Source of the DNA: Selaginella moellendorffii
Taxonomy: Eukaryota > Plantae > Lycopodiophyta
DNA: 64,000 bases
Direction: 5' to 3'
NCBI RefSeq assembly: GCF_000143415.4
Contig: NW_003314261.1
Span: 620,001-684,000, forward strand
Shown: piece after piece, positions 1 through 58,760 of the stretch
How positions within the stretch are numbered: position 1 is the stretch's first letter
Layout of the letters: every line of letters starts with the position of its first letter
Notes under the pieces: model-generated
Seen by the model: only the letters and a program-made list of their open reading frames with translations
Database searches by the model: none
What the model was told of the DNA's origin: nothing
Made by a program: the position numbers and the translations under genes

Positions 1-631
1 CTCTTGCCTTTTCTGCTTGTGGTTGGCAGAAACTACTCACATTCATTCCAAGATAAGAGAAAACAAATCGATTTATATTATATAGAAAATACTTCTTTTT
101 TTTGTAAAGATTAAGTTCCCCAAAGGCAGATTGTTTTGTTCTAGGGTCGGCCCTTGCATCTCTATCCACCCATTCTCGAGCTTGAATAACTGTACGGCCA
201 TATCACAACTCACTTTTCATGATAGTCACAGGTTCACTGGTTGAGATGGAAATGGATTTTGTGCTACTTTAGATTTTATACTTAGACTTAGCAAGCATTA
301 CTAAACATGGATCTGTCTTCACTATGCAAAATTTCATTGAATAGAGATGTTATATTTAAGGAGGTGTGCGGCAGTTTACTAGTGATTTATAAAGTACAAA
401 AGAAAGGGAAGCTTGATTTACCTTTGTCTCGTGTTTAATGTAAAACTACACCTATATTATTTATTCAGGTCTCTCTTTCTTTTCTCTACAAACGGGGCAA
501 GATTGTTGCAGATACAACAATACGAGGAGAGCCTCGAGAAGTTGATGGATGAATACTCTTGAGAACCTAGACAAGTTTTATCGACAAACTTAAAAAGAAA
601 TTATACTAAAACAAAGAGCCACTCTATCTAG

Positions 632-2206
632 CTATTTATCAAATGCTAACAGTTTCTCGTCTTCTTCGTGTGACAGGCGCCTCCTCTTTGACGGGTCAGG
701 CTCAACGTAATGATTTCCTCCGAGACAAGCCAGGGCAATCATTTGGAGCATGCTGTCAAGCATCACGACCCTGTGTATGTTCGCCCCCCCTCGAGCGCCC
801 TGCTTCAAGCTCTGCGCCATCCGAATTCCAGCGGCTTTGAGAAGGTCATACTGCGTGTACCTCAGCACCACGTCCCCTATAGCAATTCGAAGCAGCCCTT
901 CATAAAACTTTTTTGCCCCGGACGAAAAAAAGCCACCGTCAACTTCATTACTCGGAAGTGGATACCACTACACCAACGAGCAGATTATGAGCCGTGTCAA
1001 GTAAAGCCTCCTCACCTCTGGAGCAATGTACAAGTCTCCCACGATGAACGGCCGCTTCAAGTATTTTGCACCCGATTTCTCCCGGTAGTTTTCACGCAGA
1101 AACTTGGTCCCAAGAGCAAACATCCTGTCAATGACAGCCTTTGAAGTTGGAGCCTGTCCTGATGGTCGAGTCGTCTCCACAAAATCTGTAACCAAAAGAC
1201 GCGGGTAAGAATTCGGAACATGAAAAACGAAAAAACACAACGAAACCCGAATACGCGCTGTCCGAGACTTTGTTACCACCCGCCAATATTTGACCTTCAG
1301 CTTTCAGAATTGCATACGTGAACTTGTGCTTGGAGAGGGCCAACAAGTACACTGCATGAAAAGAAAAAAAATGAATGAAAACATGAAAAAAAAAAGTACT
1401 TGGTTTGTAGTGTCTGTTCGACAAGTTGCACCTGACTTCAGGGCGAGCACAAGCTGCAGCCTGGGCAATTGCTTCCCACGTCTCGTTGGGCTTGAACTCG
1501 CTGATAAAGGCACATCGCTGTGCCGACAGGCGAAGCCGTTCCACCTCACACTCTGTTCGCTTGCGAGGCCCTTCATTGAACACAAACGCTCTCCCGTCGG
1601 TCCGGCCAGTATCTGCCACATCGTAAGGACCCTGAGGAGGTGCTTCCGTGTCGAGATGACTTCCGTCCGAGCTTGAGCTGTCGCTTCCCGATGCGTTACT
1701 GTCCTCGTGCAAGATGGCTTCAACTTCCTCCAAGGCATCGTTCTCCCCGGAAAGGAGAATGACAAAGCCCTTCTGATCCAGTTCATCTTCGTCACCATCT
1801 GCAATGGACTCTAGAAAAGAGGAATTGTACTCTGCATCAGTTGGCGTGGTGAATTTTTCAACCTGACGAATCAATTCCAAATGCCTGGGTCGGAAGTTGA
1901 GCTCTGTGATGCGTTCGTTGTACGATCTGCACAGGTCAAGGTTAACCTGGGGGTTGCGAGCAGGGATGAAAGAACTCACCTCTCGAAATCTGCCATGGAT
2001 GCGCTGATCAGGTGAAGGCAGGCATCGAGCGCATCCGCGTTCATCTTCCCGCCCTTGAACCTGTCGAAGGGGAGCTGAGAAACAGCCGCCTGGTGGCGGT
2101 GGATATTCAGGAACGGCTCCACAGCCTGGAGCACCCCAAAGTTGAACTCGCTCGGCGGAAAACGAAAAGGATCCGTCACCCCCCACACATGCTTCCTCGC
2201 CGCCAT
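632..2206 (-). CDS. Uncharacterised 5-exon protein (~454 aa) with PD-(D/E)XK nuclease-like motif and C-terminal NLS
   Basis: Manual GT-AG splicing (exons 2206-1980, 1926-1400, 1351-1247, 1185-1016, 967-632; 1365 nt) gives a stop-free frame MAARKHVWG...GRTDGRAF...FISEFKP...AIAQAAAC...PSKRRRL...FDK*. It is colinear with the pseudogene at 57097-58502 and shares three intron positions with it. Telo-box AAACCCTA lies just upstream. Confidence 0.7.
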
Positions 2207-5200
2207 CTCTTCGCCTCGCACAAACCCTAGGAAATTGATTTATTTATTAAAGCGTAGACACAGAATTGACTTGCACAAGCCTCAACTCGCCATCTTCATT
2301 CAGCTCGTTCAATTTTGTCCATGTGTTAGATGATGTCCTTCACGCCACGCTGGATTCCTGTTGTTTTTATTTGATTTTTATTTCTTTTTAAATTTTATGA
2401 AGAGTGCTTGCCTGACTTCAGTGCAGCAGTTTTCTGCGGAGATTCTTACTTGAAAAACGATGCCAGGACCAAGCAATTCTAGCCGTACTTGTGATTCCAT
2501 ACAAGAAGTGGCTGTACATAGAATGACAACATTGTGGAGCGCTAAACTAGACTAATTCTGTTAAGCATTATTCTAAAATTAGAATATAGTATACTTTTCA
2601 ATAATATAGATTTTAATATAGATAATGTTATGGCATACTAAATGTACAGAACTAGAATAGAATATCATTTTTTATGTGGAGCGCTATTATAAAACTGAAA
2701 TAAAATATAAATTAATATAGATGCCATATAATCCTCTTAAGCACTAGCAGGGTGCAATAGCTAGGCCTCTAGTAGCATGGCTGGCATGGCCGGGCTTCCA
2801 GCATTGTGGCTGCCATGGCTGCCTATGCATGCTCAACCACCTTATGGCTAGGTTAAGTTGTGCATTGCAAGATCAAAAAAAAATTCATCCACAAGAGTGA
2901 CTCAACAATAGTCTCTTTTAAAGGCTTTCATTTTATTTCTTTAGCAAGGAGTGAACATGCTATAAACTTTAGAAGCGGTAGTGTTCCTTGACTATTATTA
3001 TTTCCTTTCCAGCCATTAATCCCATTATGTTCTCTATTTAGTATATGATCAAGACACTTTAGCATAGATTACTATTACGAAGATAATGTTCACACTTTGT
3101 GAAAAATGCACCAACTTAAATGAATTATAAAGTAATCTCTCTTTGTAATGCAAAATGCATTAACTCTTAAACACCATTTGGTTGTAGGAAATAATTAACA
3201 AAGTTAACCACCCTTGCTACTTTAGGTGTCACCTTGGTTTTACAAAAATGATATGCATTGTTTACAAGTGATATATAGAAAGAAGATAAAGGCCCTAGTT
3301 TAGATAGACTAGAGTTGTTTACATGAACATACCTCTTTGAATAAAAAATAGGAATATTGAAAGAGAGGTGGGTTATATAACTAATCTATAATAATAATTA
3401 AATATTTCACTAGCTAAAGTTAATTTTCCTGTACTAAGATCAATATAATAAACAATATCAAAGTCATAGACAAAAATATCTTAGAGATACTAAATTATCA
3501 ATTAACAAATCTAAACATCTTAAGAAGCATACTAAGTAACTTACAAAAGATAATTGTAGCATAGATAATTTTCACCTTTTACCCTATAAGATTAATAGGG
3601 AATTTAAACCCTTGGACATGTGGGCCAAGAATAATGAAGTAGAACCTAAGTTTCAAGGCTTGAGCCACTGAATAAAGGGATATTGCCAAACTCCCTAGTT
3701 TATAGTTATGAATGATTAATACTCAGCTAAAACTAAAAAGAAAGACTATTATATGGATTTATATAGTATACAAACTTAATAAAGTGGCTTGCTTATTAAG
3801 CTAATCGGCCATTGGCAACTATTGGGTTGAATCAAGTTATATGCAATAATTTTATAGCCCGATCACTATCATCTACATGGAAATACATATTCTTTAGAAC
3901 ATATAGTGCCCATCCCACATGGCTCAAAACATGTACTATATGGCAAAATAGAGTCAAGTTTCCTTGCAAAACCCACCATTCTCCCTGCAAGATCATCAGT
4001 TGTGCAATGGATCTTGCAACAACTTTAGCACTAGATCCTAGCTGAAATTTGAGTGATCTATAAGAAATCCAAGCCAAGAGCCCTACAAATCTAGAGAACT
4101 ATGTTATGATGCCTTCAATTTGTCAGCCCTTTGCTGCTGCATTGTAGATGCTTAGAGGAAATCCACAACCATAAAAAAAATGTAAGGCACACAAGTCGCA
4201 AGCAAAAGAACACAAAACCCTAAACCTAGGAACAATGAGGTGCCATGTATACTACCTTAATAAGCTTGCCATATACAGTTCACGAGCACAGGCTTCTGTC
4301 CTGCTAAAACACACTTGCTGGGCTAATTATTCTAAATTAGCCATAATAATAAAGCTATCTCAACCATAAATAATAAAGCTAGACATCACTATAATTGGCC
4401 AAAGTGTAAGCCTAAGAATAAATCAAAATTACAGAATACATAAGGGTCATCTTTCTAAAAAATGCAACACCCACTTTTCCACTAACTCTAGAAATTGTCT
4501 TAGCCCTAAAAACTTAATATCTCTTTTAGGTTAACAAATTATTTATTAAAGTCCAAGAGTCAACTCCACCCCTTCACTAGTTTGCAATGGTTGGGAAAAT
4601 AGAATAAGTTTTGAACAATAGATAAACCATAAGATTTGTGATAAAATTCCCATCCAAGAGAACAGTGACTCAGTTTTAATGTAAAACTTAACCAACTTCC
4701 AATTCTCATAGCCCAATATAATGCAGAAGTGTTTAAAACATGCTTATAATTAGATAACAATATATAGGAACATAAATAAATATGGATTAAATGATTATTC
4801 AAATCTGATTGAGCAATAATAGGCCTATCAACTAATCTACATCATAAAAGAACTAATAGTTATAAATGACCAACACCCAATTGAAACTAAAAAATGAAAA
4901 CCATTATATGGATTTATATAGGTATACAACCTCCTAAAGAACAAGATTATAGTAAGAGTATTAATATGTCAACCATAAACAATTAAGTTGGACATCACCA
5001 TATGCAACCAAGGTGTGCCACCAAGACAAAGTCAAATTAATGAGAGCATAGAACATATTTAGAGTGTAAACCAAATGCAAGGTGCAATCTACCATCAAAC
5101 ACAACACTACAAAATATACAAAAGTCATATTTTTAGAAAAGTGCAATAACTATTTTTTTTACTAACTCTAAACTCTATCTAACTCAACTCCAACACTAGT

Positions 5201-8936: not shown

Positions 8937-11900
8937 GGAATAATGGAAGGCCGTCAAGGTTCTCTTGTAGATGGGCCGGGATCTGAAGGAACGTTAGGAG
9001 GAGGCATTGGTGGATCTATAAATGGTATTAACTACTCTTGATCCCTTTGTATGAAGCGTTTCAACCGCTGCACATGCATAATCTCTGGAGGATCAATCTA
9101 CTGAACATCATGCTGAACCGCATAAACTTGTGGTCCAACTTGCCACAACACTCGATACGGTCCTTTCCACTATGCAAGGAGCCCCTTAGATAAACCACAT
9201 ACCGTAAGATGGGGAAAACGGACTAACACCAAATCATCCACTTTGTATTCCGCAGGTGGATGATGATGGGAGTTGTAGCGCTGTTGTTGTCCCACATGTA
9301 TGCGGCCTAAGTGTTCGGTAAACTCTGCTTGGACAAGTGGAAGAATGCTCGTCAAATATTGATCCCAGGACCTAGCATCGGGAGCTCGTGGCAATCGCGA
9401 AGGTAAACTTAACTCTGTTGGTAATATTGGATTATGACCATATAGGAGCTTATATAATGAAGCACCAACAGAACTCTACACCCCTGTGACATAGGCATAC
9501 CAAAGAGATGGCAAATAACCATCCTAATTCGAATGTTGAAAGTTCACATACTTTGCAATTATCCCTTTGTCCGAACAAGCCGTTCCACCAGACCGTCTGA
9601 TTGTGGATGATAAGCACTCATGAAAGTGTGGCGTATCCCCAACCGAGATGTCAAAACATGAAATGCCTTAGCCATAAATGCAGGACCATTATCCAAAAGA
9701 ATCCGCTCTGGACAAGAATGTTGGAACACCACACGATTAAGGAGGAAGTATCCAACAGCAGTTGCCGAGGCGCTAGCAAGAGCACCAACTTCCACCCAAC
9801 GAGTCAAGTAATTAGAAGCAATAATAACATACTCATTGCCAGCAATCGACCGTGGAAAAGGTCCCATAAAATTAAATGCCACCAACTCAAACGGACAGGA
9901 AACTACAATTGACTCCAACCGTCTTCCACAGCACAAAGGGGAGTATTATGAGCTTGGCACCAAACGCAGCTACGCACATATCGGATAATATCACGTCGCA
10001 TCTCCGGCTAATAGAAAGACCTGCGCAGCTTCTCGGTCACATGACGATGTCCCATATGCCCACCTAGAATAGGAGAATCATGGTAGGCATGGAGAAACTG
10101 CGGAATAAAGATAGAAGGCACCACCAGTTGTAAATGATTATCAGGATCCATCCCCACAAAATAAAGAAGGCCATTTTCAAGACAATATTCAAAATGTAAA
10201 TGCCAAAAAGGCAAATCATCAGCAAGTGATGTAGGATTCTTAAATGCATCTCGAAGCCTTCGAATCCACGGCTCAATCTTTTGAGCCTCACGAACCTCAT
10301 CAAGAGAAAGTAGATCTTGCTCTGCGCCTTGTGGACACTGAACGTCAAGTATAGCAACTGCCGATGGCATAAAATCCTCGTTTAGAAAATCCATAGATGC
10401 TGGAACAATAAGCTCATTAAAAATATGATAAGAGAGTGGAGAAGGAAGAGGAGCTCGAGAAAGGGCATCAACATCAGCCATAGAACTCTTGGGCGATGAA
10501 CAACATCAAAATTATATATCTGAAACTTCAAAGCCCACCGAGCAATACGACCAACCAGGTTCTTTCGCTTCAATAATGAAGTAACGGCATCATGGTCACC
10601 TTCAAGTAATGTCTGAGAACCATGTAGATATGCATGAAGTTTCTTGAAACCCCAAACTGCTGCTAAACACTCCTTCTCTATCGTGGAGTAGTTCACCTTT
10701 GTTGGTTATAACGTATGGCTTATATATGCAATGGGATGACGCTGACCAGGCACACTCGGACTTTCTTGCATCAATACACCTCCAAGACCAATATTAGAAG
10801 CATCTACATGCAAAATAAAAGGTCGAGTGTAGTCAGGATATGCCAAAACCGGAGGAGTCGTCAACAGCTCTTTGAGATCCACAAACGCCTGCTCACAAGT
10901 TGAAGACCAGATGAAAGATGATATTAATGACTTCAGCAACGCTCGCAACAATGCAATGTGATCAGAAAGATGATCCACAAAACGACCGAAATATTGCACC
11001 TTGCCCAAGAAGCGCTGCACATCATTCACACATTTCGGAGTAGGGAACTTTAGAATGGCTACAAATTTGTTAGGATCAACTTGCAAACCTTCACGAGAAA
11101 TATAATACCCAAGATAAGTTGTGTCCTTGGACCCAAACACACAATTTGATCGCTTCAGCTTTAAACCAATGTCCCATAGCCGATCCAACACTTTACACAC
11201 ATCACGAATGTGCTCCTCCCATGTCCCCTCTGAGTGAATCAAGACATTATCAATGAAGTCAACAGTCACTTCTGGCATATCACAAAGAACCTTGTCCATC
11301 ATCCGCTGGAAAGTTGTTGGAGCATTGTTCAAACCAAACGACATCACCAAGAACTCGTACAAACTAAACAGTGTACGAAAAGCAGTCTTAGGAATATCTT
11401 CTTCGGCCATCGGTACTTGCTAATACCCAGAAGCAAGATCGAGCTTGGTGAACCAATGACTTTGCCCTAGACAATCCAAGAGATCAGCAATGTGAGGAAG
11501 AGGGTACACATTTAAGATTGTCACTTCATTTAACGGATGATAGTCGATGCAAAAACGAATACTCCCATCAGGTTTCGTCACAAGATGAGGTTCACATGCC
11601 CAAGGACTCCGTGACTTTCGAATAACACCCTTCTCCAACATCTCCTTGACATTTGCATGTAAAATCTTGATCTCCTTGGGTGACCGACGACGAACATGAA
11701 CCTTGATTAGACGAGCATCCCCGGTTGGAATCGGATGACGTGTGGCAATCTTGGTCCCAGACAATAAGTCAAATTCAAAGAGATCAAAATACTCCTTCAT
11801 GAGCCGGTCAATAGCTGCAATACAAAGATCATCGGAGGGATCGAAAAAGGGAAGAGCAGAACAAGATGGAAACATAAGAGGAAATAGTGGGGGAACAAAA

Positions 11901-13566
11901 GTAATGGAAGCAGAGGTAGAAGTAGAGGGACAAAGAGGTACGGAAGTGAGAGGAATGGATGAAACATAAGGAAATATGAGACAAGGGGGAGAAGCCTCAA
12001 AGTCACACTTGGCATAATTGTGCTGCAACCAATTCATACCAAGAATGAGGTCAAAAGCTTGACTCGGCACCACCCGCAACGACTGCAACTCAAGCTCGAG
12101 ATCACCCACACGCACAACCAGGTCCACCTCATCTCGTGCACATGCATGTGTATGGCCATTGCTATAAAGAATGAAAACTGGATCCGCCGCACAATGCAAG
12201 TGTAGACGATAAGGTGTGGCAACAGGTCGAGCAATAGAAGATAAACTCAAACCTGTATCAACTAATATGGAGAGAATAATAGAAGACCTCTTGTTATAAA
12301 AATGAGCTTGGAAAGTAAACATTAGATGAACCGGTGCCAAATGAACCCTTTGATGATACTCCTGAAAGAAAGATGGAAGGGTCACTAACTTATTTGCACA
12401 AGGTCCCTCCGTTACTTGCATGACTCCTCGTTTCCTGGATGCACCTCGGTGTCCAAACCTTCCACCGCAGCAGCACCAACGGGACGTTGCTGACGCTAAA
12501 GTCTCCACCTAGGAAATGGAGGTCGCCAATCCGGAAAGCACCGACAACGCCGATAAGTATGACCAACTTCATCACACGCCCAACAACGAACATCATGGCC
12601 ACGACCACATCCTCACCCTTGTCCTTGGACTCGAGTAGCAGCAGCATCAACCTCCATTGGAACAGAGCCATCACTCATAGGAAGTGGAGCTGAAGGACGT
12701 GCAGCAAGAAATGGAAGAGGCGACGTCTTATAACGTTGTGCCAAGTGAAGAGCATCATCAAGGGTGGCAGGAGCAAGTGCATATACAAGTCCGACAAGAT
12801 TTTGACGAAGTGCTGGCCACAACATTCCTAGCTTGATCCGCTCCGATATATTTGGCTCCGCACGAAGCAAAAGACTTCGGAAATGAACGCTAAATTGCAT
12901 CACCGACTCAGATGGCCTTTAGCGAAGACGATGCAATTGTTAGAAAGCATCATCATAGTCATCGGCATGTCTGAAGGCGCGTTTGAAGACATCCAGAAGA
13001 ACACTCCAATCCCCACGAGTGGCTGCTCCCAAACCGTTGTACCATTGCAACACCATCCCTTGGAGACACGTGGGAAACTCACGCAAACATCGAGCATCAT
13101 CCCAAGAATGATATGTGGCAATCACCGTAAAGTGATCGAACCAATGGTACACATCATCCCCAGGATTCCCGCGAAAGAACTCCGGCCGAACGCGAGGATT
13201 AACACCAAGAGTAGGAGGAGTTGTACCATATGCCGTGAATGCCGCCATCAACTAAGTTTGGTTGTTCAATTGCAAGCGCATAGCATCAAGCAATTGTACC
13301 AACTGTTGCTCCAGAGTCAAAGGAGGAGATTGATGATCTACTATGGAGACGAATGAAAAAGAAAGAGCAAAAAAAGAGAAATGACAAAAAGCTAGAAAGA
13401 AATGGTAAATCTAAACAATGCAAAAAGCTAGATCTAAACCAAAATCTTGAAAGGAAAGAACAAAAGAAAGGAAATGGAAAAAACTAAATCTAGACAATGC
13501 AAAAAGCTAGATCTAAATCAAAATCCCAAATTCAAGCCTTTCTTAGAGACAATCAAAGGTGCCCTT

Positions 13567-20792: not shown

Positions 20793-21468
20793 TGCTCCAC
20801 CCGGTAATCCGCTGTATCGATCGACCATCAGGCCGATCAATCAATCCTTCTGGAATGATAGGATTATCAGCCCCATTTTATAGCGCGATCGAAAAGATAA
20901 CGTGCCGCCAATGATTGCCGGATTCCCTTCTCCTACCCAGACCCTGTTTGATCGCCGGCCGACGGAACTGATGGATTGGATCGATCATCCTGCGCGTCGG
21001 CGTCGCTTTGTCGGCAGCATCGCCGCGGGGAAATCGGCTCCGAGCGATAGCGCCAGGACAAACACACGAGACGATTGAAGCGTTGGCATCAATCCACGTC
21101 CATCCGGCATTCCACTCCGCGGCCCCTTTCCTCGCATCAATCGCTAGTAGTCCCCACAAGAAATCAATGCCTAGAGAACGAGACAAGATGGATCCATCGA
21201 TCCAGGAGGAAAGAGGGCGGATGACGAAGAAATAAATGCACCGATTCCTTGTTAGAGCCATGGCCGGCTGGCGAGCTAGGGTTTTTTAGTTTATCTCCTG
21301 TTTAAAATTCCCACCCAGATCTCTATCCAACGGCTCCCGGGCCTCGGGCACATCCTACGGTGTCTGTCAGTCCGTACGGTCGACTTTGACCAAAGCATAT
21401 TCTACTTTAGAGATTCTTTGTTCTTCTCTCTCCTCTCGATTAGGGCTCTAGCGTGCGATGGGGCGGAG

Positions 21469-23100
21469 ATGCGGCGATCGGCTTCCCGGGCGTTGATTTT
21501 CCAGGAGCAGGATGACATCGCCAGGATTGTGAGGTCTGTAGGCCAGGATTTGGAGCAGGCGCGGTGGATTCACGCCCAGATCGAGCAGAGCCAGCACCGG
21601 CGGAATCGATTCCTGGCCAATCTGCTGGTGGAAATGTATGGCAAATGTGGCAGGATTCGCGAGGCTCGCGCGGTGTTCGATGGCATGGTCGAGCAACCCA
21701 ATGATTTCTCGTGGAACATCCTGGCGTGGGCGTATGCCACGAATGGGCAATTGGCGGCCGCGGAGGAGATCTTCCATAGCATGACGCTGAGGAGCTCTGT
21801 CTCATGGACGAGCATGATACAGATCTACTCGCACTACTCCAATCCATTCATAGCGCAGGAAGTTCTTGGTAGAATGCCCGAGTGGAATTTGATCTCCTGG
21901 AACACGCTCATAGCAGCGTATGCCCAGAGTGGGCATTTGCAAGAATCTAGTGAGGTGTTCTTGGCTATGCCTAAGCGCGACGTGATCTCCTGGTGCTCTC
22001 TCCTCGCCGGATTCGTCCTCGCCAGCGATCCCTCCTCCGCCCAGAGGTTTTTCCAGCGATCGCCATACCACGACCGCGTGAGCGCGACATCGGTGCTCCA
22101 GGTCCTGGGCGGGGATCAGGGGCGCGTGATCTTCGACCGGATGGAGGAGCGCGACAAGATCTCGTGGAATGCGATGATCGCCGCGAATTGGAGCTCCCTG
22201 GAGGGCGCCCGCGCGGTGTTTGATCGCATCCCTCTGCGCGATCTCGTGGCGTGGACAGCGATGATCCAAGCCAGCGCCAGACTGGGGCTCTTCGTGGCGG
22301 CCAAGGAGTTCTTCGATGCGATGCCGGGGAGAGATCTCATGGCCTGGACGACGATCGTGGCTGGAAGCAGCGAATTCGCGGCCGCCCAGATCGCCTTCTC
22401 CAAGATGCCGCAGTGGAGCGTCGTGTCGCTCACAGCGCTCCTGGATCATCACGACGACCATCGCTCCACTGGGAATCTCTCGCTGGATCTCTTCGATCTC
22501 TTTGATCGAATGCCCGAGAGGAATGTGGTGTCCTGGACGGCAATGCTGGGATCGCTAGCGAGGAGGATGGATCTCCTCGCGGCCAAGCGCGTCTTCGATC
22601 GAATGCCACAGCACACGATCGTGTCCTGGAACGCGATCATGGCGGCCTTCGCGCTCTCCAGCAGCGCCATGACCGCGATCGTGAGCTTCCAGCGATTGAT
22701 CCTGGATGGATTGCCGGTGAATTCCATCACGTTCCTCGTCCTCCTCACGGCTTGCAGCCACTTGGGTCTCGTGGATCAGAGCCGCGACTACCTCGTCGCC
22801 ATGGCTATGGATTTTGGAGTCCCTCCAAGCGTGGATCACTACTCTTGCATGGTGGATGTTCTTGGGCGATCCGGGCAGCTCCAGTTCGCGACGAGCTTGC
22901 TTGCGACGATGCCCATGGTGCCAGATTACGTTGCGTGGTGTAGTGTTCTGAGCGCTTCCAAGAATCTACACGATGTGGAGAGTGGGGTTTTCGCCGCGAG
23001 ATCCGGGCTTGAGTTGCGAGCTCGCGATCCGGGCTTGAATCTACTGCTTTCGAACATCTACTTTGGTGGTCTCCAGAGAATTTCTCCAGATCTTTCGTGA
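21469..23100 (+). CDS. PLS-class PPR protein with E-type C-terminus, no DYW
   Basis: Intronless; LVEMYGKCG; ~31-aa repeats (F..MP.R..VSW.AM); LTACSHLG, HYSCMVDVLGRSG, LLSNIY. Confidence 0.92.
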   Translation: MRRSASRALIFQEQDDIARIVRSVGQDLEQARWIHAQIEQSQHRRNRFLANLLVEMYGKCGRIREARAVFDGMVEQPNDFSWNILAWAYATNGQLAAAEEIFHSMTLRSSVSWTSMIQIYSHYSNPFIAQEVLGRMPEWNLISWNTLIAAYAQSGHLQESSEVFLAMPKRDVISWCSLLAGFVLASDPSSAQRFFQRSPYHDRVSATSVLQVLGGDQGRVIFDRMEERDKISWNAMIAANWSSLEGARAVFDRIPLRDLVAWTAMIQASARLGLFVAAKEFFDAMPGRDLMAWTTIVAGSSEFAAAQIAFSKMPQWSVVSLTALLDHHDDHRSTGNLSLDLFDLFDRMPERNVVSWTAMLGSLARRMDLLAAKRVFDRMPQHTIVSWNAIMAAFALSSSAMTAIVSFQRLILDGLPVNSITFLVLLTACSHLGLVDQSRDYLVAMAMDFGVPPSVDHYSCMVDVLGRSGQLQFATSLLATMPMVPDYVAWCSVLSASKNLHDVESGVFAARSGLELRARDPGLNLLLSNIYFGGLQRISPDLS

Positions 23101-37287: not shown

Positions 37288-37559
37288 GGATTTGGAGTAA
37301 GATTGGATCGAATGCACGATGGAAGAAAGCGAGCTTCTTCTTTTAGAGTGTAGTGTCGGTGGACCTTAGACGCGTTGCGCAGGGGCAGGATTCGATCCCT
37401 AGTAGTCTCATTTTTCTACCTCTACCGCATTTCATTTTAACGTCCTCTTTTTTACCCTTTGTCTAAATTATAGGGCTAAGATTCGAACACACGATTGTCC
37501 TTTCCTAGCAGTCGCTTTTGATTTTTTCTTCTGGCGAGCGATCGAGCAATCGATCGCTG

Positions 37560-39404
37560 ATGTCCGCCTATGGCCGATCAAGGCGCTTGCTTCTTGTAGC
37601 CGTGGCAGCAGCGGCGCTGCTCGGATTCTTCTCCCCAGCGCGATTGCTCGTTCTCGGCCAATCTTCTTGCCCTCTGGATTTCTCGGTGACTGCCGACGAG
37701 TTTGCTTTCGCGAGGAATGACAGGGATCCGGGACGCCAGTGTCTGGCCGTGAGGGAGGAGCTCAACCTTGTCATCGCGGCGCAGCTCAACAGGACGCAGA
37801 GATTCTTGTTCCCAGCAGCCACCGCATCGTCATGCATCCAAGATTTCCAGGCGTCGCTCCAGCGCCAGGGCGTGGCTCCAAATATCACGGTACGGTGTAG
37901 CATCGATTCTCAGACTCTAGAATCAGGATCCACGCGCTGCCCGAATTTCACCAGCGTCGGGGATTTCACGAGCGCCACGAGCTCGGCCTCCATAGTGAAT
38001 ATCCAGACGAACTGCCGAGGAAATATTGGAGATGGGCCGTCTTGCAGCGCTTGCACTGCCGCTGTGGTGAGCTCGGTGAGCTTTCGATCCAATGGCAGCA
38101 CTTGCCTGGATTACGCTCACATCTACGCTGCCTCCATCGTGAATCTTGATGGCCCGACGGATCCAGGCACAGTGGCATGCATGTTCTTCAACCAGGGAAG
38201 CCGAGGTGGGGAGAAAAGAGAGGTCTGGAAGATCGCTTTGATCGTGGTGGCTGGATTTTTAGCGTTAAGTGGCACAGGAGTGCTGGCTTGGCTATGGTGG
38301 AGGAAACGCTGCAAGGATAAATCTCGAAGGAAGCTGCTGGAGGATCGAGACTCCACTCTCGAGAGATCGATGCATTCCAACGCGAGCTTGATTCGCTTCG
38401 ACATGCACGAGATGAAGGCGGCGACCAGGAACTTCCACCGGACGACGCTCATCGGGCAAGGTGGCTATGGAAACGTTTACAAGGGAGTTCTCAAGGATGG
38501 AACGGTGGTGGCACTCAAGAGATTCAAGAACTGCTCTCCCGCGGGTGACGAGGGATTCGTCCACGAGATGGAGATGATCAGCAGCGTCCGGCACAAGAAC
38601 TTGGCTCCTCTCTTGGGGTGGTGCATTGGAAGCAGCCGCAGCGAGGGACACCAGAGGATCATCGTCTACGAGTTCATGTCCAACGGCAGCCTCGACGATC
38701 ACCTCTTTGGGAAGTTTAAGAAGAACCTCGACTGGCCGACTCGCCAGAAGATAGCGATTGGAACGGCCAAAGGATTGGCATACTTGCACAACGGTGCGCA
38801 GCCAGCGATCATCCACAGGGACATCAAAGGTGGCAACATTCTCCTGGATTCGGAATTCAACGCCAAAGTCGCGGACTTCGGCCTCGCCAAGTTCGCTCCC
38901 GAGGGGATGACACACATGACGACTGGAGTTGCTGGAACCCAAGGCTACGTCGCTCCAGAGTACGTTCTCTACAATCAGCTGACCGACAGGAGCGACGTCT
39001 ACAGCTTTGGGATCGTGTTCTTGGAGCTGCTCAGCGGGAGAAAGGCGCTGGTTCACACTCCAGCCAGCGACACGCCGGTGCCCATCGCGGACTGGGCGTG
39101 GTCAGTGATGAAAGAGACGCGGATCGTGGATATTTTGCAGCAGCCCATGGACAAGCTGGGAGACGAGGAGGTGATGGAGAGTTTTATACTGGTGGCACTC
39201 CTGTGCGCTCATCCCCAGGTAGCTTACAGGCCGAGCATGGCACAGGTTGTCAAGATGCTGGAGAACGATCTCGCGGTGCCGTCCATGCCCGAGAGGCCGA
39301 TCCCACTCATGGTAAACGCGCAGGAGCTCGCCTCCACGACCGGGACGAGCTACTCGGGCTCGGTTCCATTCTACTTCAGCAGCTCGGGAGAACTTCCCAG
39401 GTGA
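37560..39404 (+). CDS. RKF3-like receptor kinase (Cys-rich SPARK ectodomain, TM, kinase)
   Basis: Signal peptide, CPLDF...C-rich ectodomain, GPTDPGTVACMF, TM, GQGGYGNVYKG, ALKRFKNCSPAGD, EGHQRIIV, HRDIK, DFGLAKF. Confidence 0.92.
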   Translation: MSAYGRSRRLLLVAVAAAALLGFFSPARLLVLGQSSCPLDFSVTADEFAFARNDRDPGRQCLAVREELNLVIAAQLNRTQRFLFPAATASSCIQDFQASLQRQGVAPNITVRCSIDSQTLESGSTRCPNFTSVGDFTSATSSASIVNIQTNCRGNIGDGPSCSACTAAVVSSVSFRSNGSTCLDYAHIYAASIVNLDGPTDPGTVACMFFNQGSRGGEKREVWKIALIVVAGFLALSGTGVLAWLWWRKRCKDKSRRKLLEDRDSTLERSMHSNASLIRFDMHEMKAATRNFHRTTLIGQGGYGNVYKGVLKDGTVVALKRFKNCSPAGDEGFVHEMEMISSVRHKNLAPLLGWCIGSSRSEGHQRIIVYEFMSNGSLDDHLFGKFKKNLDWPTRQKIAIGTAKGLAYLHNGAQPAIIHRDIKGGNILLDSEFNAKVADFGLAKFAPEGMTHMTTGVAGTQGYVAPEYVLYNQLTDRSDVYSFGIVFLELLSGRKALVHTPASDTPVPIADWAWSVMKETRIVDILQQPMDKLGDEEVMESFILVALLCAHPQVAYRPSMAQVVKMLENDLAVPSMPERPIPLMVNAQELASTTGTSYSGSVPFYFSSSGELPR

Positions 39405-39512: not shown

Positions 39513-41453
39513 ATGGACAGAAGCGCTGTGGTCAGACAGATCGAGTCCTCCAAGACGCTCCGAGCAGCCACCGAGGTCCACTCGCGAATCCGTGCCAAGA
39601 TCAATCCATCCGACGTCTTCGTGCTCAACAAGCTCATCGAGATGTATGGGAAGTGTGGCAGCCCGAGGCACGCACAGCAGGTTTTCGATGGGATCCGGGC
39701 GAAAGATAGCTACACTTGGGTGATGATCATCTCGGCCTACGCGCAGAACCGGCAGCTCCTCGAGGCCAAGCGTCTCTTCGACGAGCTCCCGGAGGAGTGT
39801 CCAGTGGCTTCCAACGTCATGCTGTCGGCCTATGCCCGGGCCGGGTATCTGGAAGCCGCGAAGCTCCTTTTCGATCAAATGCCCGAGAGGACACCGGTCT
39901 CGTGGAGCGCGATGCTATCCGCCTATGCCCAAAATGGGCATCTCAAAGAAGCCGAGGAGATATTTTCTTTTATGCCAGAGAGAACGATCGCGTGTTATAA
40001 TGCGATGCTAGCAGCGTATGCCCAAAGTGGGCTCTTGGAAGACGCAAAACTTACCTTCGATGCCACTCCAGAGAAGAACCTCGTGTCGTGGAATGCTATC
40101 CTAACCGCATATGCCCAAAGTGGGCATTTGCAAGTTGCCGAGTTTCTCTTCGAGCAGATGCCGGCGAGAGATCTTGTGACGTGGACAACACTGCTAACGG
40201 GGCACACACACAGATCCCACTTGGATTCCGCCATGGCGCTGTACGGCGGCATGCCCGAATGGGATCCGTTCTGCTCGACCGCAATGCTAACTGCATATGC
40301 CCAGAATGGGCATCTGGATGGGGCAAAGCGGATTTACGTCCAAATTCCGGAGCAGGACCTAGTGCTCTCTACCGCAATGCTCACTGCGTATGCAAGCAAC
40401 GGAAAATTGGCTTTGGCAAGGCAAACCTTCGATCAAATGGACCAGCGCAACGTAGTCACCTGGAACGCCCTGTTATCAGCATATGCCCAGCTTGGGCATC
40501 TGGATGAGGCGTCAAGGCTCTACGAGAATATGCCCGAGCATAATCTCATATCGACAACGGCTGTGCTCGTGGCTCACGCGGAGGCCGGCCACGTGGAAGA
40601 AGCGAAGCGAATCTTCGACGAGATGCCCCAGCAAAACGTTGTGTGCTGGAACGCGATGCTCGTGGCATATGCCCAGAACGGGCATCTGGAGGAGGCCAAG
40701 CACACGTTTGACGCGATGCCCAATCAGAATTTGGTGACGTGGACGGCCATGGTTGGCGCCTACGTTGGCGGAGGGGCCCTAGACGAGGCCAAGGCGCTCT
40801 TCGACGCGATGCCCGAGAGGAATCTCGTGTCGTGCACGACAATGCTGGCGGCGATGGCGCAGCGCGGCGATGTGCACGCCGCGAGGGCGCTGCTGGATGG
40901 GATGTGGAACCCCGACGTGGTGTGCTGGAGCGCGATGCTGGCCGGCTACGCGCAGAGCGGCCACTCGATCGAGGCGCTGGATCTATTCCATGCGCTTGCG
41001 CCGATCGATGCGCCGGACGAAGCGTGCTTCGTGTCCGTGCTCCTGGCGTGTAGCATCCAGGGCAAGGTCTATGGCGCGCGATCCTACTTCGTGTCCATGG
41101 GCATGGACTATGGATTGCGAGCGAGCAAGCAGCACTACTGCTGCGTGCTGGATCTCTTGGGCAGGGCCGGGCATCTCCGCGACGCGCAGGATCTGATTGG
41201 GAGTATGCCGTTCTCGCCGGATGCGCTGGAGTGGCGATGCTTTCTGGGAGCTTGCCGGAGCTACAAGGACATGGAGAGTGGCGCTAGCGCTGCGCGGCGG
41301 GTGTTTAGCTTGGAGCCCGAGGACTCGGCCTCGTATGTGCTCCTGGCAAACATCTACCGGGGTGATCGCAGTGATCTCTGCGGCGCCATCGTGAGGCCGA
41401 GTGATGGAGAAGGCGGTGGCAGCAAGCTCAACGAGAGTTTGATCGTCACGTAG
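39513..41453 (+). CDS. PLS-class PPR protein with E-type C-terminus, no DYW
   Basis: Intronless; LIEMYGKCG; about 14 ~31-aa repeats (AYAQNGHL..A...F..MP.RN.VSW); HYCCVLDLLGRAG; YVLLANIY. Confidence 0.94.
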   Translation: MDRSAVVRQIESSKTLRAATEVHSRIRAKINPSDVFVLNKLIEMYGKCGSPRHAQQVFDGIRAKDSYTWVMIISAYAQNRQLLEAKRLFDELPEECPVASNVMLSAYARAGYLEAAKLLFDQMPERTPVSWSAMLSAYAQNGHLKEAEEIFSFMPERTIACYNAMLAAYAQSGLLEDAKLTFDATPEKNLVSWNAILTAYAQSGHLQVAEFLFEQMPARDLVTWTTLLTGHTHRSHLDSAMALYGGMPEWDPFCSTAMLTAYAQNGHLDGAKRIYVQIPEQDLVLSTAMLTAYASNGKLALARQTFDQMDQRNVVTWNALLSAYAQLGHLDEASRLYENMPEHNLISTTAVLVAHAEAGHVEEAKRIFDEMPQQNVVCWNAMLVAYAQNGHLEEAKHTFDAMPNQNLVTWTAMVGAYVGGGALDEAKALFDAMPERNLVSCTTMLAAMAQRGDVHAARALLDGMWNPDVVCWSAMLAGYAQSGHSIEALDLFHALAPIDAPDEACFVSVLLACSIQGKVYGARSYFVSMGMDYGLRASKQHYCCVLDLLGRAGHLRDAQDLIGSMPFSPDALEWRCFLGACRSYKDMESGASAARRVFSLEPEDSASYVLLANIYRGDRSDLCGAIVRPSDGEGGGSKLNESLIVT

Positions 41454-41504: not shown

Positions 41505-43640
41505 CTAGTCCAGCTCTTCGAGTTCCTCAAGTTCTTGGCACTTGGCTTTGAGTTTTCCCAGTTCCTGGCGCTTAGCTCTGAGATCAGCGAGCATCTGCGA
41601 GCTGGAAGAAGTCGCGGGAATCTTGTAAATCTTGCACACAGCCTGGAGTCGTCTCTGGTTATCCTGGATATCTTCGAGCTCTTCTAACACGTCGAGGAAA
41701 TCTCCCTCGTAGACCAGCTTGCGCTCACACATCCCGATCTTCTCTTCTGTGAGTAGCATCTCCAGACCATTGTCGTGATCCTGTGCGAGCTCGACACAGC
41801 CCAAGACATCCTCCCAAGTTTCCGGCCGATCCAAATCCACAGCAGCAACACCCTCCAAGTTCCTGGGCTCGAGCAGCGAGAGATAAGCACTGCCTTGCAC
41901 TGGAACAGCCATCTTACACTGCACAACTCCTGAGAAGAAGAAAAGACTAAGATCTTCTCTCAAACTCTAGCAAAGCTCACCTTGCATGGCTTTGTGAGAA
42001 ACCTTTCCAGATACTTGGTATGGCTGAAACTGGAAGCTCGAGAAAGCGTCCGGAGACACGAGAAACAAGAGTACTATGGTGTCCTCCTCAGTGTAGCTGC
42101 GATCGTACTCGTGCCTCCAACTTCGCAGGGCCTGCATTGCCTTTGCCAGATGCTCCACTGCCGGTTTGCGATCGCGACAAACTGTGGCAACTCCCAGCGT
42201 TCGTGGCAACCACACGAAGCCAAGTCCTGTGCTGTTCTTTCCCAGTGGTCTCCATAGGAACTTTGCTGCATCCATGCCTTGAAGAACGCAAAAAGTTTTG
42301 TAGAATCATAGCGAGAAGAAACAAAGAGCGTTATACCAGCTCCGAGCAATGCATCCTCGAGATCTCCTTCGTAGTAACGCAGCAAGAGAGGCTCCACCAC
42401 CTCGGGAGCACCATCGCAGCGTTCACAGCGAAACCTCGTGGACGTAACTTTCGCTTGTACACACTTGGTATGGTACCAGCCGAGACAAGCCCCGCATTGA
42501 ATCCTTCCGGTGGCACGCTCCACAGCAAGCTGAATCGCTCTGCAAGCACGACCAAGTGAGAAGAAGTCCAGCCAAGATCACAAGAACTTCCGCCGGCAAG
42601 GCCATGATGTTGCGCTGGAGAGCCTGGCGGAGCACGTACTGCTCGAAGACGAAGCCCCGCAAGCTCGCGTACTCCTTGAACATCCGAGTAGCCTCAAGAA
42701 ACCTTCCGAGCTTCCCCACGTTCGTAGCGCTACACAGGTACTGCGCAAACATGCTCGCCACCTTGTCCGAGCAAAACGTATACTGGAACCGGCTGAAAGA
42801 TCCGGGCCTCAACACGAAATGGAATAGCCTCCACGATACGTTCTGCGAACTTCCATGGTTTTCCAAGATGGCTGCCACATTCTTGAGCTTCGTGCTCGAA
42901 AGGCACTTGGTAACATCCGAAGCAAAGTCCTCCTCGGTGAGAGTTTCAACCTCGTGATCCCAGAGAAGCCGAGGGACGCCTCCAAACCACTCGAACGCTA
43001 AGTTGGCGGCGGCCACTCTTTGGTACGCGTGAGCTGCTCTCGCGGACGGGCTCCCATCCGGTAGCCGGGGCATCGAATCGGCCCTCCTCTTCCAGCTTTC
43101 CACGAGAGCATCAAACTCTCTCTTGTTCCAAACCGGGAGATAGCGAGTGTAAGTCATGCGGAGCTTCCTCGCGATCTTTGTGTTGCTCTCGTCTGGAGAG
43201 CCCGCAAGGAGTGCTCGAGCGCCGAGCGTCCTGCCGGACGAAATCTTCTGATCGATCAGATGGTAGTCGACACTGGGCGATTCGATGAGGTGGAGAGGAT
43301 AGTCTTGCTTGGCGATGTGCTTGAGAGAGCGGCCTCGAAACTCCCAGATGAAAGTCTCGGACTCGTACAGGATGAGCGAGCCCGGCTTGTCGATGCCCGT
43401 CCTGATGATGAAGTACCACAGGAAGGCCGATTTGCCCACGCCGGAGTTGCCATTCAAGAGGCACAGAGAGCAGTCCTCGATCGCCAGCGTTTCTACGATA
43501 TCCTGGTAGAGCGCATTGAAAACCTCCCGAACATAGAGCGCATCCATCCTCTTGTGCAAAGAAACCACGTCCGGCAGCGCCAGAAATCTCCCAGCCGCGT
43601 AGGAATCACGGCCTCCAAAGCACGCGCGCGCCCCCACCAT
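41505..43640 (-). CDS. Crinkler/RHS-type P-loop NTPase + PHD-like finger + degenerate REase-like domain + SAP-like/coiled-coil tail (4 predicted exons)
   Basis: LYVR, Walker A GNSGVGKS, YHLID, LAGSP, YLPVW..RE, FGGVPR, LRGFVFEQY; IQCGACLGWYHTKC...CERC; WRPLGKN...LFLVSPDAF..F.FQPY...VVQ. Predicted introns 42530-42587, 42278-42336 and 41930-41980 join the ORFs in frame. Confidence 0.75.
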
Positions 43641-53741: not shown

Positions 53742-54095
53742 CTACATGACGATGCTTGGAGGAAGCCTCGAAGGCATGAAGACGAGACCCATCAAGAGCA
53801 CGAAGATGATGAGAGGGACGAGCATGAGGAAGAGAGGCGGGGGTGGAAGTGGTGGTAGAACAATGGGAAGGACAACGACCAGGACGGCCACCACAGCCAG
53901 CAGCGTGAGCGAAGCACAGTCGAAGTAGTTTACCATGAACAGTGGATCCGAGACGCTGCGATCAGACGAACCATCCGAGGCGGATCTCCGTGGATCAACT
54001 TCTACACCATCAAGCTCGAGCTCAAACGTTTTCTTCGAAGAACACGCGCCGCAGAGACACGAGGAGGAGGAAGAGGAGGAGGAGCTCACGCTCAT
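53742..54095 (-). CDS. ARGOS/ORGAN SIZE RELATED (OSR) family protein
   Basis: TM-LPIVLPPLPPPP-TM (LFLMLVPLIIFVLLMGLVFMPS), the OSR-domain signature. Start uncertain (54095 or 53936). Confidence 0.8.
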   Translation of the reverse strand: MSVSSSSSSSSSCLCGACSSKKTFELELDGVEVDPRRSASDGSSDRSVSDPLFMVNYFDCASLTLLAVVAVLVVVLPIVLPPLPPPPLFLMLVPLIIFVLLMGLVFMPSRLPPSIVM

Positions 54096-54830
54096 CTTAG
54101 AACAAGAGGTCTTGCTCGATCGCTCAGGCCGGAGGAGGAAGAAGAAAAGGAGGAAGAAAGGCCACTGTCTATCATTCTCAGGTTGTTGCAAAGAAGAGAG
54201 ACAATTACGCTGGAGAGATGCAGTGAACTGGAGCAAAAGTCCTGGATCGATCACAGCAGCAGCAGCAGCAGCAGCAGCAGGAGGTAACAGCACCTACATT
54301 CATTGCATTGACATTAAAATCTCCCTTGCCAGGTTCTTTTCTTTCCAGTCCTCGAGGAAGAAGGAAGCTCTCGAAATATTCCCGTAAACTCTTTCGCTGT
54401 GCGGCGTCGCTGTTCTTGCGCAGCGCGAATCACCAAGTGTAAGTGTGTGTGAGAGAGAGGTAGAGCTTAAAGCCACGGAGAGAGAGAGAGAGAATGGAGA
54501 GAGGCCAAGTTCTTCCCCCCCTTGCTAATGCTCTACGTCTTTTTCTCTTCTCACACCCAACAAAAGAAACAAGAAAAGAAAGAGGGGTCGCGAGAGAATC
54601 GCCAGGAACCTTGTTCGATTCAGAGAAGCTTTGGTGTTTTTTTAATCTTTGCTTGAAACATGGAGAACAAGAATGGAGGTCGAATTTTGGGCTTGTACAT
54701 GCATGATTCAGTGCTCTGCAAATGCGTCCTCTCGGTCCCCAAAAGGAGGAAACCTCCATTGTTGTCTCGCGATTATCTCTGTTTTTTTTTTTTCGCAGTG
54801 ATTTGATTCCTTGATTCCACTGTCTCCTCC

Positions 54831-54899
54831 TTTGGTTTGGCGCTAAAATGGATCAAACACTTCGGTTTCGCGGTAAAATGGATCAAACACTTTGGTTTG
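54831..54899. repeat. 30-bp tandem repeat, ~2.3 copies
   Basis: TTTGGTTTGGCGCTAAAATGGATCAAACAC / TTCGGTTTCGCGGTAAAATGGATCAAACAC / TTTGGTTTG. Confidence 0.85.
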
Positions 54900-55080
54900 A
54901 GAGACCCCAGAAGTAATATAACGGTCGTGGTGAGATCACGATTACGACACAGTTGCTGGGGTCCAATCCGACCACCGTTAGTTCTAAGCATCTGGGTCAT
55001 CGCAAAACGGCATTTCCTCACGTGGGCAGTGATCACTCCCTCGAATTCCACGCTCGATCCAATCGATCTCGGCAATCTCT

Positions 55081-56883
55081 CTAGCTCCAGATTGATACCA
55101 TGTTGGCGATGAGCAGCGCATACGCTGCAGCGTTCTCGCCATCCAGTTCCAAAACCTCGTGAGCTGCGCGAATTCCTAGCTCCCCGCCCTGGAGCTGGAG
55201 CTGGAACTTACACGCAGCGAGGACGCACATCCAGTCGAGAGAATCTGGCGCGAAGGGCATGTCCAGCACAAGTTCCATGGAGTCTCTCACGCATCCGGCC
55301 CGCCCAAGTGCGTCCACGACGCAGGTGAAGTGCTGCTTCTTGGGCTCCAGGAAGAAATCCTCGCGCATCGACGCAAAGCAGCGCCGGCACGCCTCCAGTT
55401 CCCCGCCGTGAGTGAATGCCAGCAGCGCCTGGACGAAGCACGACTCGTCCGCCTCCTCGAAGACCACCTTGAAAAGATTGAATTGGTCGACAAAATCTCC
55501 AGCGGTGGGAGTCCTGGCATCGTTCCTCGCGAAAGTGTTGTGCGAATGGGCGGCAAGCACGGCAGACCAAGACAGTACGGACTGTTCCGGGCTGGCGTTC
55601 AAGGTTTTCATGGCCTCACACGCAAGACCGCATTGTCCGTACGCGAGGATCATGGCCGTCCAGGTCACGTCGCTCTTGTCCGGCATTGCACGAAAGAGTT
55701 CCTCTGCTTCCAGCAGATGCCCTGTAGCGGCAAATGCTGCTAGCATGCAGTTTAACGTTGCAAGGTTCCACTCAGGCATTTTGTCAAAGAATTCTTTTGC
55801 TAGACCAATGTGTTGAGACACGCAGTAGCCAGTAAGCATAGAAGTTAAAGTTATAATGTTCTTTTGTGGCATTGATTTGAGCAAGTTGGCGCACTCTTCC
55901 GGATACGAGCCTTGGGCAAGCCCGTCCAAGAGCGTATTCCATGAAACTAGATCCCAGTAGGGCATTTCCTTCAAAAATAGCTTCTTGGCCTCGTCAACTC
56001 GACTGTTTTGAGCAAATGCCGAGAGCATCGTGTTCAAGGACACAATGTTCCAAACCGGCATCGTTTCATAAAAGAAAAGTCGGGCACATTCTACACGGCC
56101 AGCCTTGGAGAACGCTGCAAGCATGGAATTCATTGATACCAAGTTGTGCTCCTGCATAACGTCAAAGAAGATCCGTTTCGCATCTTCCACAAACCCACAC
56201 TGGGCATACAAAGACAGAATCGTAGTCCAGGAAAACAGATCATGCTCTGGCATAGAAAGGAATGTCTCGTTACATTTCTCAAGCTTTTGTGCCTCGGCAA
56301 AAGCCAGCAAAAGGCTGTTCCAAGACACTAGATTCCTCTCGGGCATGGTATCAAAGATTCCTTTTGCACTTCCAAAATCTCTTTCTTGGGCGTATGCATC
56401 TAGCATTGCGTTCCAAGAGACAGTATCTCTTTCCGGCATAGACGAAAAGATATTCTTAACCAGGGAAATATTCCCAGTGATGCATAGGAGAGCCGTCCAG
56501 GCAAACAGATTCCTCTGTGGCATAGAATCAAAGGCTTCTACCGCAAGACCTATATGTCCGTTCTGGGCATATGCCGTCACTAGAGAAGTCCATGACAAGA
56601 GATCTTTCGAGGGTATTTGATCAAAAAGAGACTTCAACTCATCAATCTTTTTCGATCTCCCATAAGCTGCAAGAACTGTGTTATAAGAGACGGTGTCTCG
56701 TCGGGGCATGGAATAAAACATGAGTATCGCATCTGCTAGATGCCCTGTTCGGGAATATGCTGAGAGAAGTGTGTTCCACGCGATGATCGTCTTCTCCGGC
56801 AATGTGTCGAAGATTTGCTTTGCTCGATGGAGACTCCCGGATCGCGAATAGTCTCGGAGCAAAAGAAAGGAATCTTGGAGCAT
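55081..56883 (-). CDS. PLS-class PPR protein with E-type C-terminus, no DYW
   Basis: Intronless; ~31-aa repeats (F.SMP.R..VSWN.ML.AY); HFTCVVDALGRAG; AAAYALL. Confidence 0.92.
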   Translation of the reverse strand: MLQDSFLLLRDYSRSGSLHRAKQIFDTLPEKTIIAWNTLLSAYSRTGHLADAILMFYSMPRRDTVSYNTVLAAYGRSKKIDELKSLFDQIPSKDLLSWTSLVTAYAQNGHIGLAVEAFDSMPQRNLFAWTALLCITGNISLVKNIFSSMPERDTVSWNAMLDAYAQERDFGSAKGIFDTMPERNLVSWNSLLLAFAEAQKLEKCNETFLSMPEHDLFSWTTILSLYAQCGFVEDAKRIFFDVMQEHNLVSMNSMLAAFSKAGRVECARLFFYETMPVWNIVSLNTMLSAFAQNSRVDEAKKLFLKEMPYWDLVSWNTLLDGLAQGSYPEECANLLKSMPQKNIITLTSMLTGYCVSQHIGLAKEFFDKMPEWNLATLNCMLAAFAATGHLLEAEELFRAMPDKSDVTWTAMILAYGQCGLACEAMKTLNASPEQSVLSWSAVLAAHSHNTFARNDARTPTAGDFVDQFNLFKVVFEEADESCFVQALLAFTHGGELEACRRCFASMREDFFLEPKKQHFTCVVDALGRAGCVRDSMELVLDMPFAPDSLDWMCVLAACKFQLQLQGGELGIRAAHEVLELDGENAAAYALLIANMVSIWS

Positions 56884-56928
56884 CAAAAGGTTAACAAAAA
56901 GAGCGGAATGTTTTCAACAAAACAGTAT

Positions 56929-57001
56929 TGGAAATGGGAGGTATCGATCCTCCTACCCCCTACTTGCAACGTAGATACTCTACCAATTGAGCTACATTCC
57001 C
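56929..57001 (-). tRNA. tRNA-Ala(TGC)-like gene, 73 nt
   Basis: GGGAATGTAGCTCAATTGGTAGAGTATCTACGTTGCAAGTAGGGGGTAGGAGGATCGATACCTCCCATTTCCA folds as a full cloverleaf with G3:U70, A73 and T-loop ATCGATA. TATA-like element ~30 nt upstream, T4/T5 tracts downstream. G32 is atypical. Confidence 0.8.

Positions 57002-58691: not shown

Positions 58692-58697
<6 letters not shown>

Positions 58698-58757: not shown

Positions 58758-58760
<3 letters not shown>

Follow-up and report, generated by a model that had tools for sequence, protein, structure and literature searches.

What kind of protein is encoded by LOC9656481, a minus-strand gene of the lycophyte Selaginella moellendorffii that lies at ~620.6–622.2 kb on scaffold GL377565.1 and occupies positions 632–2206 of the 64-kb stretch of DNA analyzed here (hereafter, the window)? 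An original prediction, made from the DNA letters, had read it as an intact five-exon gene of an unrecognized PD-(D/E)XK nuclease-like family, fast-evolving, lineage-restricted and nuclear, and our analysis supports this overall interpretation. On balance, we favor the view that LOC9656481 is a functional, spliced and expressed host gene for a stand-alone PD-(D/E)XK protein of the HsdR/RecB-like kind. In this view, the protein has kept its catalytic constellation intact and probably works in the nucleus as a metal-dependent endonuclease or nickase on DNA. The product of LOC9656481 belongs to a new sequence family of a well-known fold and motif type, and the gene itself is annotated but uncharacterized.

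The predicted gene structure was confirmed. Reading from the ATG at 2206–2204 to the stop, the five joined exons amount to 1365 nt, and their translation is letter-for-letter identical to the RefSeq protein XP_024527987.1 (P0036; 454 residues), the length that had been predicted for the spliced frame. We reached this entry by a word search with a long read-through open reading frame (ORF), which returned four S. moellendorffii hypothetical proteins, followed by a cluster look-up. LOC9656481 is already present in RefSeq, where it is labeled “uncharacterized protein”; the description “unrecognized” therefore holds for the domain databases and literature that we searched, but not for gene annotation. 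Splicing was assessed with transcript-type contigs of runs X1, X2, X7 and X10, drawn from four studies and aligned with window positions 300–2500. All four junctions (1926/1980, 1351/1400, 1185/1247 and 967/1016) were seen in these contigs, each bounded by CT..AC on the plus strand and hence by GT..AG on the gene strand, and a single X7 contig of 1351 nt crosses all five exons with zero mismatches. Runs that contain 0.72–0.74 of the sampled words of LOC9656481 contain at most 0.13 of those of a family copy at the far end of the window (far-end copy 1, described below). These runs are therefore RNA-like, and the figures suggest that far-end copy 1 is at best weakly transcribed.

Intron 2 can be spliced from two donors. 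The 48-nt form, seen in run X7, is productive, whereas an alternative donor after 1432, used in run X1, creates an 80-nt intron and a shifted frame that stops after 258 residues, with loss of the last core strands; the two-donor arrangement may represent regulated unproductive splicing. Intron 3 (window 1242–1276, minus strand) may likewise have a rare form, of 56 nt, which one X1 contig suggests and which would shift the frame. The older Joint Genome Institute (JGI) model, EFJ38289 (444 residues), wrongly skips the ten residues GNKVSDSAYS, which are present in RefSeq, in the RNA contigs and in all paralogs.

Sequence searches of Pfam, NCBIfam, PADLOC and the Protein Data Bank (PDB), for which both individual proteins and the family profile served as queries, gave no match to the core domain. 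In Pfam, the target drew no match at E-values up to 10, nor did 28 members at E-values up to 1; searching the PDB with the profile returned nothing, no membership in HSDR_N (PF04313) or a related profile was detected, and none of these sequence searches pointed to a known non-nuclease family. The sole domain recovered by the library searches was an N-terminal SAP domain in two paralogs. A helicase motor or methyltransferase domain was found in no family member, and the neighboring genes are unrelated host genes. No paper that names these loci came up in our search of the literature. To delimit the family, we scored a profile built from the four closest proteins against 1.84 billion cluster representatives with a cut-off of E ≤ 0.001, recovering 24 proteins (15 of them at E ≤ 1e-10). 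Among the 20 matches that were looked up, every named one belongs to S. moellendorffii except the weakest, an archaeal Ig-like protein (P0026; E 1e-4), which we set aside as irrelevant. The remaining matches are uninterrupted ORFs on 1.2–2.5 kb Logan contigs, transcript-like in look. In a maximum-likelihood tree, the Logan sequences interleave with the S. moellendorffii clades on branches of up to 1–3 changes per site; the diversification of the family therefore predates the separation of those sources, and the family is fast-evolving. Judged by these sequence matches, it looks lineage-restricted, as had been proposed, with about ten loci per S. moellendorffii genome. Outside the conserved residues described below, its members are 20–30% identical.

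In the absence of profile matches, structure prediction was informative. An AlphaFold2 model of the LOC9656481 protein, computed with the family alignment, reached a predicted template modeling (pTM) score of 0.73, with a predicted local distance difference test (pLDDT) value of ~90 over residues 185–400 and most of residues 10–105; residues 107–183 and the last ~35 residues are disordered in the model. A second, divergent family member gave a pTM of 0.71. Both models fit the alpha-beta-beta-beta-alpha-beta core fold of PD-(D/E)XK nucleases; in the model of the target, D186 precedes strand 187–192 and E219-x-K221 ends strand 212–220, with the acidic E84 upstream, next to a helix. A restriction endonuclease (REase) fold, which the original prediction had anticipated, is predicted for two divergent members. 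Structural comparisons with VIA-align agree: helix-only matches to the C-terminal tail of the target aside, the matches of both models are mostly PD-(D/E)XK nucleases, which make up most of the top 50 for the second member and include BbvCI, a putative REase, McrC, NucC, DUF820 and CidB for the target. A Foldseek search of the PDB with either model returned no match below E 0.1. A fold search of the ESM Atlas retrieved bacterial clusters annotated as HSDR_N and “restriction endonuclease subunit R” at template modeling (TM) scores, by target, of 0.68–0.75, together with fungal clusters carrying Crinkler, PDDEXK_12, DUF7924 and DUF6826/Pkinase_fungal annotations. When the core is compared by language-model features, it points to PDDEXK_12, HSDR_N and SPOK2_N.

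The candidate catalytic residues were examined in a 28-sequence family alignment, in which the denominators vary from 26 to 28 by position. The upstream glutamate, E84, is kept in 25/26 members and H91 in 23/26. D186 is retained in 20/26; position 219 is occupied by E in 25 and by D in 2 of 27 sequences, and K221 is kept in 20/27. Ten residues past this lysine, within helix 227–245, lies Q231 (25/27), followed by a Tyr at 235 (25/27), N243 (25/27), Y253 (27/27) and G271 (28/28). Judged from the alignment, this layout matches that of RecB-type and EcoR124I-type HsdR nucleases, in which a helix holding Motif I precedes Motif II by ~117 residues, Motif III comes next, and the helix directly after it carries QxxxY (PMC2475608). 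The residues of the claimed D...ExK...QxxxY signature are conserved family-wide, but LOC9656481 itself, together with its closest paralog, reads QxxxC, with Cys235 in place of the motif Tyr. In EcoR124I, the corresponding Y183A mutant cleaves DNA more than 2-fold slower and yields mostly nicked DNA, with cleavage not abolished (PMC2475608). By analogy, the Tyr-to-Cys change probably slows the putative nuclease. A local hhalign comparison of the family with EcoKI HsdR gave a single, non-significant match (E 0.13), which sets the GRTD/GFAD segment of the family on EcoKI GFAD(298)YVLFV, 14 residues ahead of the EcoKI E-A-K. We take D298, E312 and K314 to be the catalytic residues of EcoKI.

Considered together, the N-terminal helices (residues ~10–105) and residues 184–400 would form one restriction-endonuclease domain of the HsdR-N/RecB type, split by an acidic, Ser-rich disordered insertion of ~80 residues and followed by a helical, disordered tail with a KRRR motif. 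This domain would retain Glu84, Asp186, Glu219-x-Lys221 and Gln231 in their canonical places, with Cys235 substituted for the motif Tyr, and its most likely mechanism would be that of a metal-dependent endonuclease or nickase acting on DNA in the nucleus. A nuclear location is suggested by the KRRR motif, by similar basic clusters in paralogs and by the SAP fusions. What the analysis shows is the structure of the gene, its expression, its place in the family, the predicted fold and the conserved residues; catalysis, substrate, nuclear location and biological role we infer.

The nearest known counterparts of the family are the N-terminal nuclease domains of Type I HsdR and of Type IIG/IIL enzymes (EcoR124I, 2W00; Vibrio vulnificus, 3H1T; BpuSI, 3S1S; DrdV, 7LO5; HSDR_N, PF04313). 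Unlike these, the Selaginella proteins are eukaryotic, encoded by intron-bearing genes, stand-alone, without a helicase motor or methyltransferase partner, and without detectable sequence-profile membership. They also differ in accessory features: the target has the acidic disordered insertion and, at its C-terminus, a helical tail that bears a basic motif, and paralogs carry SAP fusions. A 2012 census of PD-(D/E)XK proteins listed HSDR_N as prokaryotic only (PMC3424549).

A REase fold need not imply cleavage. The protein could instead be a nuclease-derived but catalytically inert binder or scaffold for DNA, RNA or chromatin, in which the fold is kept for binding, as in the mitoribosomal proteins mL37 and mL65/mS30, which are described as animal-specific, non-catalytic rRNA-binding proteins and as “repurposed endonucleases” (PMC8998825). 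Proteins of this PDCD9 family resemble the target structurally in VIA-align, and structurally only. However, E84, D186, E219, K221 and Q231 are intact in the target and conserved across most of a family whose members are 20–30% identical, a residue pattern that would be unexpected without catalysis or metal binding, and loss of the motif Tyr in EcoR124I slows rather than abolishes cleavage (PMC2475608). We regard an inert binder as a distinctly less likely explanation than an active nuclease, though one to be taken seriously. In contrast to mL37/mL65, the Selaginella family keeps catalytic-type residues, has no Pfam match to PDCD9 (PF07147), displays NLS-like (nuclear localization signal-like) and SAP features, and has a conserved fold that begins within the first ~10 residues, so that a presequence would hardly fit. 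On account of the retained catalytic-type residues and the missing PDCD9 match, we rejected an identity as a mitoribosomal protein of the mL37/mL65 kind.

Among eukaryotic proteins, the nearest clusters by fold and language-model features are fungal Spok, FunK1 (Pkinase_fungal/DUF6826), PDDEXK_12 and Crinkler/CR-type proteins, which likewise are lineage-specific, multi-copy REase-fold domains with D-ExK-QxxxY motifs. These neighbors raise the idea that LOC9656481 encodes the toxic nuclease of a genetic-conflict system, either a killer/drive element or an immune executioner, analogous to the Spok or Crinkler-type nucleases and restrained by the acidic linker or by a partner protein. The Spok3 nuclease domain likewise finds its best match in V. 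vulnificus HsdR (3H1T), has QxxxY and is needed for killing (PMC6660238), while the Selaginella family is similarly lineage-restricted and fast-diverging, with frequent pseudogenes and an unproductive splice isoform in the target. Nevertheless, the likeness is at the fold level only: the CR/Spok-type clusters reach TM scores of 0.37–0.48 in the Atlas fold search and feature scores of 0.76–0.85 (to PDDEXK_12, DUF6826 and SPOK2_N clusters), all below the reliability lines of the tools themselves. The Selaginella proteins, from a plant host, have no kinase, NTPase, coiled-coil or Crinkler header and no Pfam match, and the coupling of a REase to a kinase or NTPase was not observed, as Pfam matched neither the Crinkler header (PF20147), nor Pkinase_fungal, nor any NTPase in the family. 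Neither a signal peptide nor an antidote gene was identified, and LOC9656481 is surrounded by ordinary genes of the host, which encode peptidases, ferredoxin, an epimerase and a RING protein.

Selection on the gene bears on the same question. We estimated the ratio of nonsynonymous to synonymous changes (dN/dS) with the Nei-Gojobori method on our own codon alignments. Between the target and its closest paralog, SELMODRAFT_414822, dN/dS is 0.36 overall (dS 0.127), falling to 0.24 in the core and rising to 0.48 in the linker and 0.77 in the tail. For P0003 and P0004, two haplotype alleles of another family locus, it is 0.48 overall and ~0.8 in the core, the latter from small counts, and dS has reached saturation in the comparison of the target with P0003. 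Purifying selection acts on the core, though not strongly. These dN/dS values are below 1, with no sign of positive selection. Overall, a toxic conflict nuclease appears an unlikely reading of this gene. We give correspondingly little weight to its broader form, in which the family would be a nuclear nuclease system, specific to lycophytes, for genome conflict or immunity and the plant counterpart of the Spok HsdR-like killing domain and Crinkler effectors. In that form, the stand-alone nuclease would be held in check by its acidic linker, by a partner or through unproductive splicing, and its copies would turn over by birth and death.

How the family changes over time can be followed from copies inside and outside the window. 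The original prediction had reported distant colinear copies at the far end of the window that share three intron positions and phases with the target. Plain tblastn searches with exon peptides reach these copies only at E 0.035, but the 28-sequence family hidden Markov model (HMM), run on a six-frame translation of the window, recovered far-end copy 1 as four colinear plus-strand matches at 57094–57294 (E 9e-7), 57671–57898 (8e-9), 58066–58239 (7e-7) and 58293–58499 (7e-11), and far-end copy 2 as one plus-strand match at 62944–63159 (E 4e-4); every peptide pair quoted earlier falls inside these matches. Copy 1 has three introns in exactly the positions and phases of the target, as claimed: intron 1, in phase 2, splits an Arg codon; intron 3, in phase 1, splits the GAT codon of an Asp; and intron 4 is in phase 0. 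Intron 2 is absent from copy 1. Both copies are true family members, and both are pseudogenes: copy 1 carries TGA at 57899–57901 and TAG near 58063–58065, each at a Trp of its relatives, and a 1-nt frameshift near 57378, while copy 2 is more decayed.

Outside the window, the block common to the target and SELMODRAFT_414822 spans only 1.6 kb, made up of the gene body together with its introns, and is 89.8% identical in nucleotides; the copy thus arose by duplication at the DNA level rather than by retroposition. P0003 and P0004 (SELMODRAFT_410804/424274) have conserved flanks, and one of the two alleles has changed Lys to Asn within its ExK motif. The proposed birth-and-death evolution fits the two window pseudogenes, the 1.6-kb gene-body duplicate and the K-to-N allele. 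The family spreads by duplication of DNA, keeps its introns, diverges fast and in many cases decays.

Multiple copies also bring to mind the nuclease gene of an unrecognized transposable element. The duplicate is confined to the gene-body block and has a hAT transposase gene 6 kb away, and the pseudogene copies are located in a PPR-rich (pentatricopeptide repeat-rich), repeat-rich region. Even so, the unit has no bounding terminal inverted or direct repeats—the only inverted pair around LOC9656481, AT-rich and 80% matched, is unconvincing. Three introns are conserved between deeply diverged paralogs, no transposase, reverse transcriptase or integrase partner was found, and the allelic copies are kept in conserved synteny with host genes. 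This explanation is highly improbable, and we rejected a transposon origin in view of the host-gene flanks, the conserved introns and the lack of convincing terminal repeats.

The preferred reading, a stand-alone and probably active nuclear nuclease, provides structural and mechanistic annotation for about ten Selaginella genes labeled “uncharacterized”, which domain databases fail to recognize. With it, the HsdR/RecB-like branch of PD-(D/E)XK nucleases gains a plant family whose members stand alone and have introns; in eukaryotes, this branch is otherwise known mostly from conflict proteins of the fungal Spok/FunK1 and Crinkler types. If active, the family would offer a tractable case of rapidly turning-over nuclear nucleases in an early-diverging vascular plant; if inactive, it would be another REase fold recruited for binding, like mL37/mL65. 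Its interest would rise if a role in conflict or defense were true.

Table 1. Exons, introns, candidate functional codons and far-end family copies, in window coordinates
Feature	Position	Strand	Remarks
Exon 1	1980–2206	minus	residues 1–75 and 2 nt of codon 76; joint 1926/1980 in four runs
Intron 1	1927–1979	minus	53 nt, GT..AG, phase 2; position and phase common to far-end copy 1
Exon 2	1400–1926	minus	end of N-terminal helices, acidic disordered linker (residues 106–183), nuclease-type core motifs
Intron 2	1352–1399	minus	48 nt, phase 1; productive form
Exon 3	1247–1351	minus	includes GNKVSDSAYS, missing from older JGI model
Intron 3	1186–1246	minus	61 nt, phase 1, split GAT codon; common to far-end copy 1
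Exon 4	1016–1185	minus	from RNA contig joints and translation
Intron 4	968–1015	minus	48 nt, phase 0; common to far-end copy 1
Exon 5	632–967	minus	stop codon 632–634; end of fold, helical tail, disordered C-terminus
Codon E84 (GAG)	1902–1904	minus	candidate Motif I glutamate, next to helix; E in 25/26 members
Codon D186 (GAC) in GRTD	1596–1598	minus	candidate Asp of Motif II, directly preceding predicted strand 187–192
Codons E219-F220-K221 (GAG TTC AAG)	1491–1499	minus	candidate Motif III (ExK), end of predicted strand 212–220
Codons Q231-A-A-A-C235	1449–1463	minus	QxxxY-type motif within predicted helix 227–245
Codons K437-R-R-R440 (PSKRRRL)	677–688	minus	putative monopartite NLS in disordered tail
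Far-end copy 1	57094–58502	plus	pseudogene, divergent subfamily
Far-end copy 2	62944–63400	plus	fragmentary, more decayed pseudogene; stop right after GETKTL

Several further features of the paralogs were noted. SELMODRAFT_414822, at positions 10001–11551 of L002 (GL377590.1), shows a stop in frame within the acidic linker when its exon 2 is given the same bounds as that of the target; its JGI model takes this stop out with a 42-nt intron, and the hAT transposase gene lies ~6 kb upstream. The SELMODRAFT_410804/424274 haplotypes are 93% identical in DNA over the gene, compared with 96–98% in most flanking blocks. The far-end copies resemble the middle of XP_024523852.1 (P0020; 1665 residues, on an 8-kb contig), a RefSeq model in which a far-end-type family fragment without ExK-QxxxY lies between two sets of PPR repeats; this model is probably a chimera that covers a pseudogene.

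Within the window, positions 54000–64000 hold a diverged tandem duplication of a block comprising a PPR gene and a family pseudogene: 56648–57787 and 61983–63398 are 80–88% identical in patches, with a PPR fragment at 61988–62128. Just downstream of copy 1, at ~58690–58790, lies a TA/TATA-type microsatellite that translates as YIYIYI. A minus-strand, NTPase-type ORF of 405 residues (42423–43640) has no Pfam match and shows no profile relation to the family (hhalign E 0.22). Ty3/gypsy-type retrotransposon remnants at 9559–12508 (minus strand) include ORFs that encode domains of aspartyl protease, reverse transcriptase and RNase H. Elsewhere, the window contains an intronless gene for a SPARK-domain receptor-like kinase (37518–39404, plus strand) and three long intronless PPR genes at 21418–23100 (plus), 39513–41453 (plus) and 55081–56886 (minus), one of which has an E motif.
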